Assembly: GCA_020536535.1 (NCBI GenBank)
Contig: JAHLWZ010000554.1
Span: forward strand, 1-39,944
Direction: 5' to 3'
Length of the DNA: 39,944 nucleotides
Source of the DNA: Pelomyxa schiedti
Taxonomy: Eukaryota > Protista > Evosea
A program made the position numbers and the translations under genes. The notes beneath the pieces were generated by a model. That model saw nothing but the letters and a program-made list of their open reading frames with translations, searched no databases and was not told the DNA's origin. Position 1 is the stretch's first letter, and every line of letters starts with the position of its first letter. This document shows positions 1,443 to 11,171 of the stretch, one piece after another.

Positions 1443-3124
1443 TCATACGGAATTGTATTTACGACGTTTGTGTTTGCTCTTTGAACAACAACAGGTGTGT
1501 ATGCAACAGGCGATGGCAATCAGAATCAGCAGTGCAAGGGCACACAAACACATCAATTTCCAGTCTGTGCTAGTTTTAGTATTTTTTTTTATTGAGATAA
1601 GTTACGGTCTGTGATCCATTCAATCCACTCGGCTTCACTGCTTATTTCTGGACCTGTAATAATATTGAGACAGGGATAAAGGATAATACATGAATACTGT
1701 ATGCGGTTGTGTTACACTCTAAAGGGCAACTCGCGGATGTGGCTATTCCGCAGTTGTTGGCTTCATTTGCACACATCCATATATAGCCACTATGATTCGA
1801 TTTTAGAAAAAGAAATAGTTGCGGTGTTTTGGTTACCTTAGACCCCACAAGCTGCCCCAGGAGTTCCTGATAGTGATATTTATACTTCTGTCACTGGAAG
1901 GGTGGCTTACTTTACAATGTAGTAGTCATCTCCATCAAGTGAGGTACCCATCCCAACAGCAACTACAGCATGATCCAGCTCAGTTGAAGAACAGTCCGAT
2001 GGGCAGTAGACACCAGCAAAGTACAACCTTTTGACAGTTAATTCTGGCAATAGTGAGGAAGGGCAAAACTGGAAGGAAGTTGCATCAACAAGCACGGAGA
2101 CTGGCTGCTCAAGCAAAGCTGCTTGGAGACCCTTTTCTCCACCAGTGATCTCTTGATATGATAGAATATCTGCAACGTAAAGGCTACTGTTGGCACTGAA
2201 GTGCTCTCAAATTAAATTTTGGGACTTGAATCTTACTGGCAGGTTCCAACCACTTCTTCATACGGGTACTCGTTCTCCGCCATTAATCCCTCATCGATAA
2301 TGTAATCAAAAGCGTTCTCTGGGTTTCCCCCTTCACAGCCATCATTTCCATAGCCAGACTCGGCACAGTCAAGGAGGTGTTGCTCAGATAGAGACCGCAA
2401 TACTCCTGTTGCAATCGCTACACATCCTTCCACGCTCCTGTTTTAACATCACAGCAGTAACAACAAGTAGTATGTTACCCTGCAGCAGAAAACGACCAAC
2501 AGCTTCCACAATCTCCCTGCGAAAGTGAATCAGTTAAGGTTTTACAACTTCCTAAGTTTTAAAACCTGATTCTTTACATCTGTTACAGCGTCTTTATCTC
2601 TCCAGTCAATTGGCGTAACAGTTCCTAGTATTTCTGGATCCTTCACGGTGTTGTTTTTAGATACTGTAAATGGTTTGAGAAGGTATTTCGCCCTATCTCT
2701 ATGTCAGATAAAGAGTGGTGCTTGCCCGGTTACCAGACCTGAATTCCTCAGGAGTGATATCAGCAAAAGCATTCAAGCCCACGGTCCAAGAGTGACCCTC
2801 TGAGTTATGCTTCAAAACAAATTGCCTATTCTGCTTCCACACTCCAAACCGGAAACCCATCTCTTCCTCAGTGCCATACCTACAAGCAAAGTTGCACAAT
2901 CAGGACAGCTTGTACTGAAGGTATTTATTATTGAGTTTGGTTTCAATTCACTACACAAAAGAGACAAAGTAACACTACACTTTGTTATACGCGGCGGCCC
3001 AGCTGAAAAATTGATGGCGTAATTGCAACTGCGGGTCAACGTCAGGCAACAAACCCTCAGTGTCACCCCTGCATCCTAACCCACAAACAACAACCACAGC
3101 AATACAAACTAAACCCACCACCAT
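1443..3124 (-). CDS. Papain-family (C1A) cathepsin-L-like cysteine protease with I29 prodomain and C-terminal transmembrane anchor
   Basis: Signal peptide MVVGLVCIAVVVVCGLGCRG. Prodomain EEEMGFRFGVWKQN...GLNAFAD. Mature region IDWR...QGDCGSCWSF (catalytic Cys), LDHAVVAVG (His), KNSWG (Asn). Two further GT-AG introns (1697-1654, 1605-1565) extend the frame to ...WKLMCLCALALLILIAIACCIHTCCCSKSKHKRRKYNSV*. Confidence 0.92.
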
Positions 3125-3262
3125 CACATCACCTGGACTTCTGCTAAGAAAGGAATTTGGGGATGGCACCATTTTTACGAAGCCACGAACAATTTGATGA
3201 ACAGAAACAACTAGCAGTTATTTTTGTTAGTTGCAAAGGCCTGAGGTTTCGTCCCATAATTT

Positions 3263-6200
3263 TCATGATCCTTTCCCTGGGGGAGTGGAAGCCTGTTGTT
3301 GGGAGACTGATGGAGTTGTTGCTGTGGTGGATGACGATGGTGCTGATGCTGATGGTGATTGTGATGGTGAGGAAGAGGCAGGGAGGGACCTGCAGAAAGG
3401 ACATGAGCCAGTCCTTACCAGGGATAGCTCCCAGTCCTCCTCGTTGAAGAAGTGGCAGCAGGAGGGGCACAGGACCACAGGCACCTCAGGCACGACGGTC
3501 TTGTAGTACTGCGCGGGCACGTGGGGTGACAGGTGCTTCCACGAGGCTGTGAAGACCTCCCTGGGTGGCAGGAGTGACAGAACCCCGGCTCCTATCCTCA
3601 TCGTCCCTCTGGCTGCCCCTGACTGTTTTGTGTTTGTTGGTGTTAGTTTTTAGTTTTTAATTTTTAGTTTTTAGTTTTGATAGCAGGTGAAGGTGGAGGT
3701 TAGGGACTGGGAGGGAACCTCATATTGTTGTAGAAGTTGGTTGAAAATATCAAATGTATCTGTGCCCTCAAGGTCCAGAGTGTCTTTGGGTGTTAGCTTG
3801 GTTTTAGTGGGGGTGAAATGATATACCAACAGAGGGGTCACTTTGCGTTTGGGGAGTTGGCTCGGTTGCAATTTTTTCTTGTGCTTCTTCGTCTGTTACA
3901 TCTTCTGCAAGTTCAAATTCTACCAGCGGAAGCGGCTAATGACCGTGATCAGTGGGTAAGAAGAAAAAATTCCGGGAAGTACCTCAAAACTACCCCAGGA
4001 GAAAATAAACGGGTGGTCACATGAGATACACTAGTGTGGAGTTATTGTTTTAATTAAATGAGGTAAGATGCACATTATTTGTAGTAGGAATAGAAAATAC
4101 TAGTATTCATAAACCTACTACAATAGTAATGCATACCCTAGCGCCATGTGTACTGACAAGAGGATTTTTACCTCCACATCGGTAGCAGAGTGGACTCAGA
4201 TCCTGCATGGAGTGTAAAGGTAAATTTGAGGAGATAAATGTAACCTCATTGTCAGTAGCAGGCTTTGATTGTATAGCCAAACTGGCCAAGTCAACTTTTT
4301 CATCCCATGGGTGAGGAATGTGAAGGTGATGCAGCTTTTCAAAAGCAAATCTGGCCAACTTATAGGCTTCAAGGTTTCGGCTTTGTTTAGCCAGGGCATA
4401 AAGAACAAACCTGTGTGTATGTGAGCTGAGCAAGGGATGTTAAAGGGGCTATGTATACAATTTCTTTACACCAAGGGGTGCTGTGGCTTCGAGAGTGTTG
4501 ACCAGCCATTTGCTGATGTTGAAAATTGTTTCTTGGTGTAATGTAGTGAAGGGATTGACCTATGTGATGATGAAACGGCTCTATTGTAGTTTGGGAGGGG
4601 ACCATAAATTCATGCACAAACTGATAGGCAAAGTAAATCTCTGCTGTGGTGCGGAATTGCTGAAATTTATTCCAATGAAAATTATCAGCAGAAGTGAATT
4701 CTTATTGGGGCATGATAATTAGTGCCCGTAACAAATAAAACGGGTTGCACCACACCTCTTTGATTGTGGGAAATTAACTTCAAATGTGCAACTGCTAGTT
4801 GCCAGAAACAGTAGGAGGCGTCTCCAAATCGGCTTTGCTGCACAGAATTGTGGCACAGATGTTCTAAAATCTATAACCGTCATTAGTTCAAGAATAGTAC
4901 GGTGGTACTACTTTCAGTGCCGCGTCCGGTTTCCCTGCATCCAACAGAACTTTTTGTGCTTTGTCAAATTGATCTGTGATGGCCAGCCAGTTTGCATAGG
5001 GCAACCAAACTATTTCTCCTAATTTCGGATTGGCCTTAACTTCAGCTAGTGCTTTATCCCATTCGTTTTGTTCCACGTACAGCTGGACTATGCCCTGCCG
5101 ATCTTGATGATATAAGAAAAATAGTATTTTGTGGAAACTACCATTCAATTTGGTAAGTACATCAATTGCATATGCAACTTGCTTGTGCTTAATGAAATAA
5201 AAGGCGGCTTTCTTTAGTGCTGCGACTTCTTTTCTGTGCATACGAAGTTATTAACATGTGAAAAATTAATATGTAATACTTGTCGAATTTACTGGTAAGT
5301 TCATGCAACTGGGAAAACATTAAATGATCCCCATAGATTTCAACAACACGAGCATACTCCCCAATTTCCTCGTATATCTAAACTGGTTTATTTCTTTGCT
5401 GCTAAAATGATGACTATACGGCAGCGGCTTCACTCCACTTTTTATCTTTTTCTTCCGTGATTGCTTGGTTCCTCATTAAATCCTAGCAGACCATCAGTTA
5501 GGCTGTAAATATTAGGAATGCTACCATCAGATCAGTATCAGGCTTTGTGGTAGTAGTTGCGATACTTGCGTGTGAAGTTGTTGCCTTGGCAGCAAGGGAT
5601 TTTGCTTCCGACCACATTTGCAAATCTGAGTACATTTCCACTGCTTTTTTAACTGGATTTTGGTTTAGGTACATAAAATAATCGCCAGTGGGCACACCAT
5701 TTCCTGACTTTATGTATAAATCCGCGGCATATTTAAAATTTCCTACCACCTTTAGTCTGGAGAAGGAAGATTTTTCCTTAAAGAAACATAGGGACTCACC
5801 TTCATAGGCAGCAATTTCAGCTTGAAAAACCAGAGGATTGTAGTTCCTACAAAAATATTTGAGAAAAACCTTCACAAAATAAAGATACGGTAGTTTGGAG
5901 GCATGGTCAATTTTCTGGCAAAGTTCTATCATCCGCAGATCTTTTACTCTGATGAAGGCCAACTGAGCCACTCGCAGCTGGAGAGCCCTGTGTGTGATTG
6001 AGCGGTGCAGAAGGGAAGATATTTGACCTTAGTGCTTCCATCCCAAGGGTTTTCCAATCCTTTGGTGTTACACCTTAAATGAACGAATGAGACTGAAAGA
6101 AGAGTTCATTTCCACTACCAAGACAGGCAATGCCATAAGCTCCATCAAAGTCCTTTTTTTCAAGGTACCTATACAGACTAGCCGATTGGGGCATGTCTGC

Positions 6201-8759
6201 AATCAATAAATTCAATGCCATTGAAAAAGACTACTCTCACCAATTGTTTGTACACTGTTAGCATGCAATGAATAAATTTTTGAGCCTGAGGGCCATTGGG
6301 ACTATATTGAAGGAAGAATGAGTACCTTGGAATGCAACAACAAAGCCGTCTAGTTTTTGTTGATGGACAGGGTAATTGGCCACCTTGATGTTGATAGTTC
6401 CTTGCCCACTAAAGCACAACATATTTTCAATTTGGGAATTCCATGCTACACTGTTGGCGTGAGGTTCCTATAACACATCAGTGGCTGTGTAATGAAACCA
6501 AGGGAATCTTACACAAAACAGGAGTTCTTTCGTTTGTAAGTCATACACTCTAAGATTGTTTGCATCATCGACAACAGCCAATTTATTCCGACTGGAAAAT
6601 ATGTAAGTGTCAGTATTGTACATTGATACTACTTACGTGCAGTTTAAATTGACACAATTAACGCGTTTATCCAGCTTCACTAATACTGTTGGGAAAGGGT
6701 TGTGGATGAAGATTTTCAGTATTGTGCCCGATTTCAGAGCAAGTATGACTCCCTCTCTTCCAACCATTCCTCCTATCACTTTCAAGAATGAGACTTCTGA
6801 GTCAACAGACCATTCTCGTTCTTGGACCCCTTTGAAATTGTAGAGTTGCATATAAAGAGTCAAGGGTATTTCTGCAAAAAATCCAGGAAAGGTAAAAAGG
6901 AAGGATACAACTTTTGACCCTGCCACGTGTGAGTTAAGAATGGTTAAAAGTAGGAGAAAGCTTACATAGCATCTCATCACATTACTGGATAAAACAACAA
7001 GAATGGTGCACAAGTCGAGTCTCAGAGGAATTCTCCACCGGACTTGTGGGCTAAGTTCTATTGCACTATAAAAAAATCCCAGGCAATTCCATACAGACCA
7101 GTAGAATCAGGGGTTTGACCCAAGTCATAAACAAGAATACAATCAGGTAATAGTACAGCCAATCGATTGTTATACAGGGCAATCAACCTGTGAAATACAA
7201 TTAGGATGTAAGGGTGATGAATGGATGGCACCTTATGCATTGGTGACAGGACACTCGATACGTCATGTTTGATACCAGATGTTGCAGTACTACTTCTGTC
7301 AGTTCATGTCTGTATGCATAAATATCCTCCCGAAATAAGAATCAGAAATAGAGTGATGTGGGATACCTGGTGTAAAGCATGAACAGTGCCATAGTACATC
7401 TGATAACAAGTCACCTGGCCTGAATTGTCAGAAAATACCTGTGAGGATAATCCTGTGACTACATATATCACCTTAAAAAATATACCACTCTGTTTTTTCC
7501 TGGCTGCTGCTTGCAGCACCAAATCCATCCCTTTGCCTCCCCAAATGTGGACAAAAATACTCCCTCTTTTGATAAGAATGATATCTGATTTGAGAAATTA
7601 GAAATTAAAATTAATGCATTCGTAGTTGCCTTCCTATCAGACCCTCCAACACATAAACTTTCTCCATTCTCTAAATAGTTGATGGAACATGGATCAAAAC
7701 CCAGAACTTTGTCCTAAACGTTTCTTGAATTACCTCAAAGAAGAGAAGAATTTCAACCGGCCTTGCTGTTCTGCCATTCAGCTGGTAAAAGGACAGTCTT
7801 TTCTCCCAGTCACCAATGGTCAGTATGGGGTTTGGTTGTAAATCACTATGCATAAGTTATTACCTGTGGAACCACAAAATGGGAAGATACGAAGTTGGGC
7901 TCCATGCTAAACACCAAACTGGGGCATTTCTTTCTATTTTCATTTTTTCTTGTCCTTGCTTGTTTCTTATAGATACAACGCCAGTGTATTGGCCAAGGGC
8001 CATATATGAGCCAGTGTTATCCCATGCACAGCACAAAATGCGTGACTGTACAGGTGTTTTCTGAATATTTTTTACAGTTGTTACCCAAAGACCTGCCGAA
8101 AGGTAAATCTGAGGTAACTTAATTGAGTTATACCAAACTCCTGGGCCGTACAGCTGAGAAGCTGTGAATTTACAGGGTTGTAGGCTAAGCACTGAATTGA
8201 GCTGTTGTGGTTGTAGGTAAGATGCCCAGCCATTGTCTTGCTATCCCATATTATAACTGTGTTGTCTGCACTGTCAAGGTTTAGTTGGTGGATTTGCAAT
8301 TCAAGGTGCAACCCTCCACTGGCAAAATAGTCCCCAGAGCGATCATACGAAACACAATACACTGAGTTTGTGTGACCTGTTGTTTTCCCCCGTGTTTTCA
8401 TAAAGAAGAATGGTGTGAGCGAGACTACCTTTGAGATATTTGATTTTGTCACTTGGAGCACATTCATTAGTGGTGTCGTACACAGCCACTGAGGTCCCAA
8501 CACCGGCCACCATCTGGCTCCCGTCTTGTTTTGGTTTTAGTTTTTGTTAAGATATACAGTGAGCATACACACCCGGTTTAAATGCGATGTCATAAATGGG
8601 AGCAGCTTCTTCCATGGTTTTACCCTCCCACAATGTCAGTTTGGTGAATGGGAATAGAATGCAAATAAACACATAGGAGAGAGGCGGCACGACAACAAAA
8701 TAACGCAGTGTGTGGTAATACCATACCAGGCTCGTTATCCACACCAACGACGACCTCAT
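3263..8759 (-). CDS. IFT122: Intraflagellar transport protein 122 (IFT-A core; WD40 plus TPR-like repeats plus C-terminal Zn ribbon), many short introns
   Basis: Spliced translation [30 protein letters not shown]..., [86 protein letters not shown]. These match recalled IFT122 motifs in the correct order. Confidence 0.95.
6850..6908 (-). other. Putative U12-type (minor) intron with GT...AT termini in IFT122
   Basis: 5' end GTATCCTT, branch-point-like CCCTTGAC with A at -11, 3' end ...TTTATAT. Removal restores CYGQKLQLYNFKG, collinear with the recalled IFT122 CQEKRLQCLSFSG. Confidence 0.72.
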
Positions 8760-10562: not shown

Positions 10563-11171
10563 TCAAAATACCATAACTCCTAAAGCAGAATTAGGAACAA
10601 TCATAACCACACGAGGAATTTGAAATTTCCTAATAAAATAATAACAAGAACAGAATATTCCACAGGTAGGTAATAAGTTTGTTTCTTGTTATTTTTTAAG
10701 CCGTGATTTTACACACAACACAACACAACACAACACAACACAACACAACACAACACAACACAACACAACACAACACAACACAACACAACACAACACAACA
10801 CAACACAACGCAACACAACGCAACACAACGCAACACAACGCAACACAGGCACCACCACAAACACATAGTAGATACTTGTTGCACATAGTGCAAGCGGGGG
10901 CCAGATAGTATGCCGTGGTTGTGTCACAGGACGTGTTGGCGGACACCACGTGGTTGAGGCCGTCATACGCCCCGCTCGAGCAGAAGCAGCAGTTCTTGCG
11001 CGTGTCGGGGATCAGCTGCTTGGCCGCCATGGGCACAGGGTCCCCCTGCGTGCACAGCACGTTGCGCCACAGAGTGCCCTTGTCTTTGGCCTCTGTTGTC
11101 ACTGGTGGCGGGGATGATGATCTGGGGCTGTGATGATGCGCCGGGGGCGTGCCCTTCCGTGTTGAAGCCAT
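10563..11171 (-). CDS. Small Cys/His protein with HNH-like (beta-beta-alpha-metal) Zn-finger signature, 2 exons
   Basis: LWRNVLCTQGD...CCFC...LNHVV...YYLAPACTMCNK/KFQIPRVVMIVPNSALGVMVF*. The single intron contains the pentanucleotide microsatellite. Confidence 0.55.
10714..10847 (+). repeat. (CACAA)n microsatellite, about 27 units, last units alternating CAACG/CAACA
   Basis: Directly visible. It lies in the intron of the minus-strand gene and generates the spurious CCVVL/TQHNT ORFs. Confidence 0.97.

Follow-up and report, generated by a model that had tools for sequence, protein, structure and literature searches.

The IFT122 gene of Pelomyxa schiedti contains a 59-nt segment that is translated in the public gene model, and the question raised by this locus is whether the segment is instead a minor-spliceosome (U12-type) intron with the non-canonical ends GT-AT. 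The window, by which we mean the whole stretch of 39,944 nt that was analyzed, encodes an IFT122-like protein, KAH3761194.1. Mapping this protein exon by exon placed the IFT122 gene at positions 3263 to 8759 of the minus strand, with its stop at 3263. Pfam matches on KAH3761194.1 comprise two IFT122 propellers, a TPR domain and a zinc ribbon (PF23381, PF23377, PF25295, PF25144). The gene has 34 annotated introns, or 35 with the corrected junction, and 30 of the 34 are between 39 and 55 nt long. Its major-intron donors (window 8726-3623, minus strand) are extremely loose, with 32 different hexamers in 34 introns, including one GCAACT donor. As GTAT begins 11 of the 34 annotated introns, a donor alone is weak evidence.

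Two further features of the window were noted in passing. KAH3761194.1 fuses IFT122 with an independent protease of the papain family located downstream (I29 inhibitor and Peptidase C1; window 1446-3172, minus strand) by means of a 390-nt "intron" at 3418-3029, through which the IFT122 stop at 3263 is bypassed. An intergenic run of a 5-base repeat lies at approximately 10700-10850, where the frames read TTQHN or CCVVL.

Reading along the minus strand, the upstream exon (6966-7057) ends in VMRCY, which aligns with the homologue consensus HLILCQ. It is followed by a 46-nt major-type GT-AG intron in phase 0 (6920-6965; GTAAGC...CAG), an 11-nt exon (6909-6919) that encodes G-Q-K and two bases of a Leu codon and fills the consensus EKKL exactly, and the 59-nt segment (6850-6908), which begins with GT, ends in TAT and would be a phase 2 intron. 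The downstream exon (6637-6849) opens with QLYNFKG and corresponds to PF23377 positions 100-169 and to solved IFT122 chains. These boundaries and lengths (46, 11 and 59 nt) are those given in the preliminary description, and all were confirmed on the minus strand. The same applies to the U12 motifs it had claimed: the donor GTATCCTT occupies 6901-6908 and the branch site CCCTTGAC occupies 6859-6866, with the branch A at 6860, position -11, 10 nt before the end of the segment. The sole internal AG (6872-6873) lies upstream of the branch site. Either motif alone occurs at chance level in the window (2 donors versus 3.2 expected, 5 branch motifs versus 5.6 expected); their combination at intron spacing would arise by chance approximately 0.003 times per window. 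The segment's 59 nt agree with the other U12 candidates in this genome, which measure 51-65 nt, and the 46-nt length of the preceding intron is typical for the IFT122 gene. The position of this 46-nt intron is widely shared, being common to a leafhopper (L038) and another eukaryote (L076), and independently favors donor 6965 over the donor at 6985.

The latter donor is the one used in the GenBank model. There, GTAATG at 6980-6985 opens a 66-nt intron (6985-6920), and the 59-nt segment is translated. In total, 754 junction models whose 3' end was left free were scored against a position matrix derived from 86 homologues; the queries of the protein searches were single exons or the unbroken, unspliced frame. 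The span from a conserved Cys to the Gln that opens the next exon is 19 residues in 86 of 102 homologues. The model consisting of the 46-nt GT-AG intron, the 11-nt exon and a 59-nt GT-AT intron ranked first of the 754 with 26.8 bits, reproduced the 19 residues without a gap and restored the conserved reading frame, bearing out the gapless IFT122 alignment that had been claimed. The runner-up scored 19.9 bits, and the best model limited to GY-AG introns reached 7.3 bits with 23 residues. Joining the U12 donor to the internal AG ending at 6872 gives a frameshift, as previously described, and also a stop; stops likewise result from use of a nearer AT or from skipping of the 11-nt exon.

These scores bear on the proposal that the mRNA uses canonical sites only, either the GenBank junction (6985-6920) or a GC donor at 6961 joined to 6872, and that the protein simply has an altered loop. 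The deposited model speaks for this, having been produced by Augustus, PASA and EVM with transcript data (PMC8887013). We nevertheless consider it very unlikely. Against 26.8 bits, the GenBank junction scores -24.1 bits with 32 residues in the Cys-to-Gln span, 13 more than the homologues, and the GC donor scores 6.6 bits with 5 additional residues. The GenBank version also drops NVMRCY, including the conserved Cys, both versions disregard the shared phase 0 intron position, and the annotation pipeline gave zero AT-AC or GT-AT introns. On the side against the GT-AT junction, no transcript-derived Pelomyxa protein was found in three size ranges or among representatives. We conclude that the public IFT122 gene model very probably reads a 59-nt intron as protein and that the GT-AT model, which derives from genomic sequence, corrects it.

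The preliminary description had further claimed that the organism has a working minor spliceosome. The assembly that we searched (52,367,397 bases in 5,337 contigs, approximately 82% complete; PMC8887013) contains genes for U11 (67.5 bits), U6atac (62.7 bits) and U12 (58.2 bits), all above the Rfam cut-offs, as well as a weaker second copy of U12. The 5' end of U11 (L005) pairs with the donor GTATCCTT, and U12 (L001) pairs with the branch site CCCTTGAC, leaving the A bulged. A match to PF18036 over the cut-off indicates a U11/U12-25K-type domain. U4atac was not found: screening with Rfam, with two patterns of complementarity and by rescanning turned up nothing firm, all of these being insensitive searches on an assembly of this completeness. 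The best pattern match, L068 (G000:C794:51271), has approximately 21 bases complementary to U6atac but neither stem I nor an Rfam match, and is probably a chance occurrence. CENATAC, PDCD7 and SCNM1 (PF14968, PF16021, PF15803) were not detected in searches that are insensitive, offering short exons only from the same ~82% complete assembly. U6atac is represented by a single gene (L003:1501-1619; G000:C841:53279-53397) that carries GCCGA in place of AAGGA, the [GU]CCGA or CC variant, and pairs poorly. This variant is known from Acanthamoeba and Physarum (PMC2396436) and now extends to the Archamoebae. A class of RTATCGG introns suggested by the odd U6atac box was rejected, with 5 matches versus 15 in the control, and the box is the known variant.

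Taken with the motifs and the junction scores, these components make it highly probable, in our judgment, that the minor spliceosome excises the 59-nt segment as a U12-type GT-AT intron. U11 would bind the donor and U12 the branch site; here the complementarity is observed and the binding is inferred. The distance from the branch A would then set the 3' end, such that the AT found 10 nt further on is used where neither AG nor AC is present, as suggested by the published behavior of U12 introns and by a spacing of 8-11 nt in the other candidates. The 46-nt intron would be removed by the major spliceosome, and the 11-nt exon would be retained, presumably since such short introns are recognized individually. 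A normal propeller blade of IFT122 is the predicted outcome; should the U12 intron remain unspliced, translation would stop prematurely, as is usual when a minor intron is not removed.

The major spliceosome might instead excise the same 59 nt, treating them as a major intron with GT-AT ends. U2-type GT-AT introns exist (PMC1557818), the major donors of this gene are very loose and often begin with GTAT, and U4atac was not found. Set against this are a full U12 donor, a U12 branch site spaced from the end as in U12 introns, a segment without a pyrimidine tract ending in AG, and a length that fits the U12 group of 51-65 nt and not the bulk of 39-48 nt, so that removal by the major machinery appears highly improbable.

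A regulatory switch through retention of both introns had also been suggested. The two introns total 105 nt (46 + 59) and are free of stops when both are kept, and the net gain is indeed 35 residues. The predicted change is not the clean in-frame insertion that had been described, however: the reading frame of the 11-nt exon shifts, and 39 residues take the place of 4. Minor introns can reportedly serve as switches elsewhere (PMC3728624), but here either intron retained singly gives a stop, the U12 intron included. Stop-free in-frame retention is frequent in IFT122 by chance, applying to 8 of 34 single introns and 1 of 33 annotated neighboring pairs, and the longer isoform would destroy the conserved EKKL strand. 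The suggestion of a switch is unsupported by these results, and we regard a regulated isoform with 35 extra residues as extremely unlikely.

The intron of IFT122 does not appear to be isolated. An exact pattern of donor plus branch site matched 39 times genome-wide, compared to 20 matches for the reversed pattern and approximately 4 expected from a Markov model; 27 of the 39 start with AT and 12 with GT. A looser GT pattern was discarded as being at chance level (44 versus 69). We examined 30 of the 39 matches, a sample chosen for perfect motifs, and provisionally assigned ends for 24 of them from open frames and conserved motifs. The resolved ends comprise 14 AT-AC, 5 GT-AG, 2 AT-AA and one each of GT-AT (IFT122), GT-CG and AT-AT. 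One of the two AT-AA candidates has an in-frame AC alternative, giving 4-5 non-canonical introns among the 24. In 23 of the 24 the intron ends 8-11 nt past the branch A. The 14 probable AT-AC introns are 51-63 nt long (L008, L009, L013, L014, L016, L018, L019, L020, L026, L027, L028, L032, L033, L035) and lie in genes that include Kae1/OSGEP, an AAA ATPase, a formate/nitrite transporter, a RAE1-like protein, kinases and a DEAD helicase; three of these AT-AC introns join Pfam positions without a gap. A probable GT-CG intron of 59 nt occurs in the gene for U5-40K (SNRNP40; L012:1501-1559, G000:C347:76733), and in the solved human chain its flanks meet directly, residue 260 adjoining residue 261 with no gap. 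Four further loci (L022, L031, L030 and L007) were assigned a probable AT-AT intron in an OTU protease gene, probable AT-AA introns in VPS13-like and RhoGEF genes, and a possible AT-AA intron. The ends of these four were set from reading frames and motifs that we presume to be conserved, and comparison with Pfam and the PDB did not fix them.

The genome paper reports only GT-AG, GC-AG and one GT-GG intron for P. schiedti (PMC8887013), and the AT-AC introns and odd ends are therefore unannotated. With IFT122 excluded, 3-4 of 23 candidates in this perfect-motif sample are non-canonical, compared to approximately 4% in animals and plants (P = 0.06-0.01). This is suggestive only of an excess of non-canonical 3' ends among the minor introns of P. 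schiedti.

Such ends also bear on whether the IFT122 intron is a U12-type intron that truly ends in AG, its final T having arisen through misassembly or representing a rare allele in a sample subjected to whole-genome amplification. The assembly does derive from the amplified DNA of seven cells (PMC8887013). However, other odd ends are present in the same genome, GT-AT recurs among U12 introns elsewhere, making up 0.43% in animals and 17% of the non-canonical ones in Physarum, and by our own estimate a single-base error at exactly that site is unlikely. We consider a hidden AG end improbable and retain the GT-AT assignment.

Comparison of orthologues, which the preliminary description had proposed, did not reveal conservation of the GT-AT intron position. 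It is absent in six orthologues (leafhopper, Perkinsus, L036, two fungi and L076), none of them amoebozoan and two of them intron-poor; the offset is 6 nt in Perkinsus and 4 nt in L036. Nor was a shared intron seen among homologue fragments that begin at the same Leu. A classic U12 intron is present towards the end of the leafhopper IFT122 gene, and at the same codon and phase Pelomyxa has a 48-nt intron with the donor GTATAC (4411-4458, minus strand) that keeps a leftover CCTTTAAC far from its end. We interpret this intron as a probable case of minor-to-major conversion, in line with the large-scale conversion published for P. schiedti.

A broader reading is possible, although we hold it as doubtful: P. 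schiedti may contain a hidden set of very short minor introns dominated by AT-AC, of which about one fifth have odd 3' ends (GT-AT, GT-CG, AT-AT, AT-AA) versus approximately 4% in animals and plants. Such a fraction would imply an acceptor chosen almost only by its distance from the branch point. In IFT122, the GT-AT intron would be a lineage-specific gain and the older minor intron would have turned major. If true, the excess of odd ends and the gain would bear on how the minor spliceosome chooses its acceptor and on minor-intron gain outside Physarum.

Much of the setting is already known, and novelty is low to that extent: P. schiedti has minor introns, GT-AT is an established subtype, and IFT122 is a minor-intron gene. 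What the genomic data add is a very probably real GT-AT intron missing from the gene model and a probable, unannotated group of similar minor introns. Published work credits P. schiedti with 90 minor introns (PMC10639083), which share organism and class with the IFT122 intron. That count was built on the annotation described above, and the IFT122 intron and the AT-AC group probably lie outside it; the annotation pipeline probably accounts both for this count and for the near-absence that has been claimed for non-canonical ends. Since the minor spliceosome has been lost from Mastigamoeba and Entamoeba (PMC8136499), its late history among archamoebae can be followed in Pelomyxa.

The closest parallels are the known GT-AT U12 introns, of which 319 are listed in animals, where they make up 0.43% of conserved minor introns, and 19 in plants (PMC10639083 supplement). 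Such introns are competent for U12 splicing, with human examples in DEADC1 and SLC24A6 (PMC1557818). The Pelomyxa intron resembles them in its RTATCCTT donor, a CCTTRAC branch site near the end, the lack of a pyrimidine tract and the AT end. It differs in its length of 59 nt, in lying 11 nt from a major intron, in its archamoebal host and in being known from sequence alone. At the level of the gene, a minor intron is already recorded for human IFT122 (PMC7507305), and both human and leafhopper IFT122 bear a minor intron as does that of Pelomyxa. The leafhopper U12 intron, however, occupies a late position at which the Pelomyxa gene has a donor of the major type, and the Pelomyxa U12 intron sits elsewhere. 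The transformed minor system of Physarum polycephalum (bioRxiv 2020.10.12.336362) is likewise amoebozoan, has non-canonical 3' ends, GT-AT constituting 17% of its non-canonical U12 introns, and shares the U6atac CC variant. The Physarum type is otherwise distinguished by a TTTGA branch site, a matching change in U12 and thousands of introns, none of which is seen in Pelomyxa. In contrast, Pelomyxa keeps the canonical branch site and a canonical pairing box in U12, and its minor introns show no expansion on a large scale, with 39 perfect pairs of motifs in the genome.
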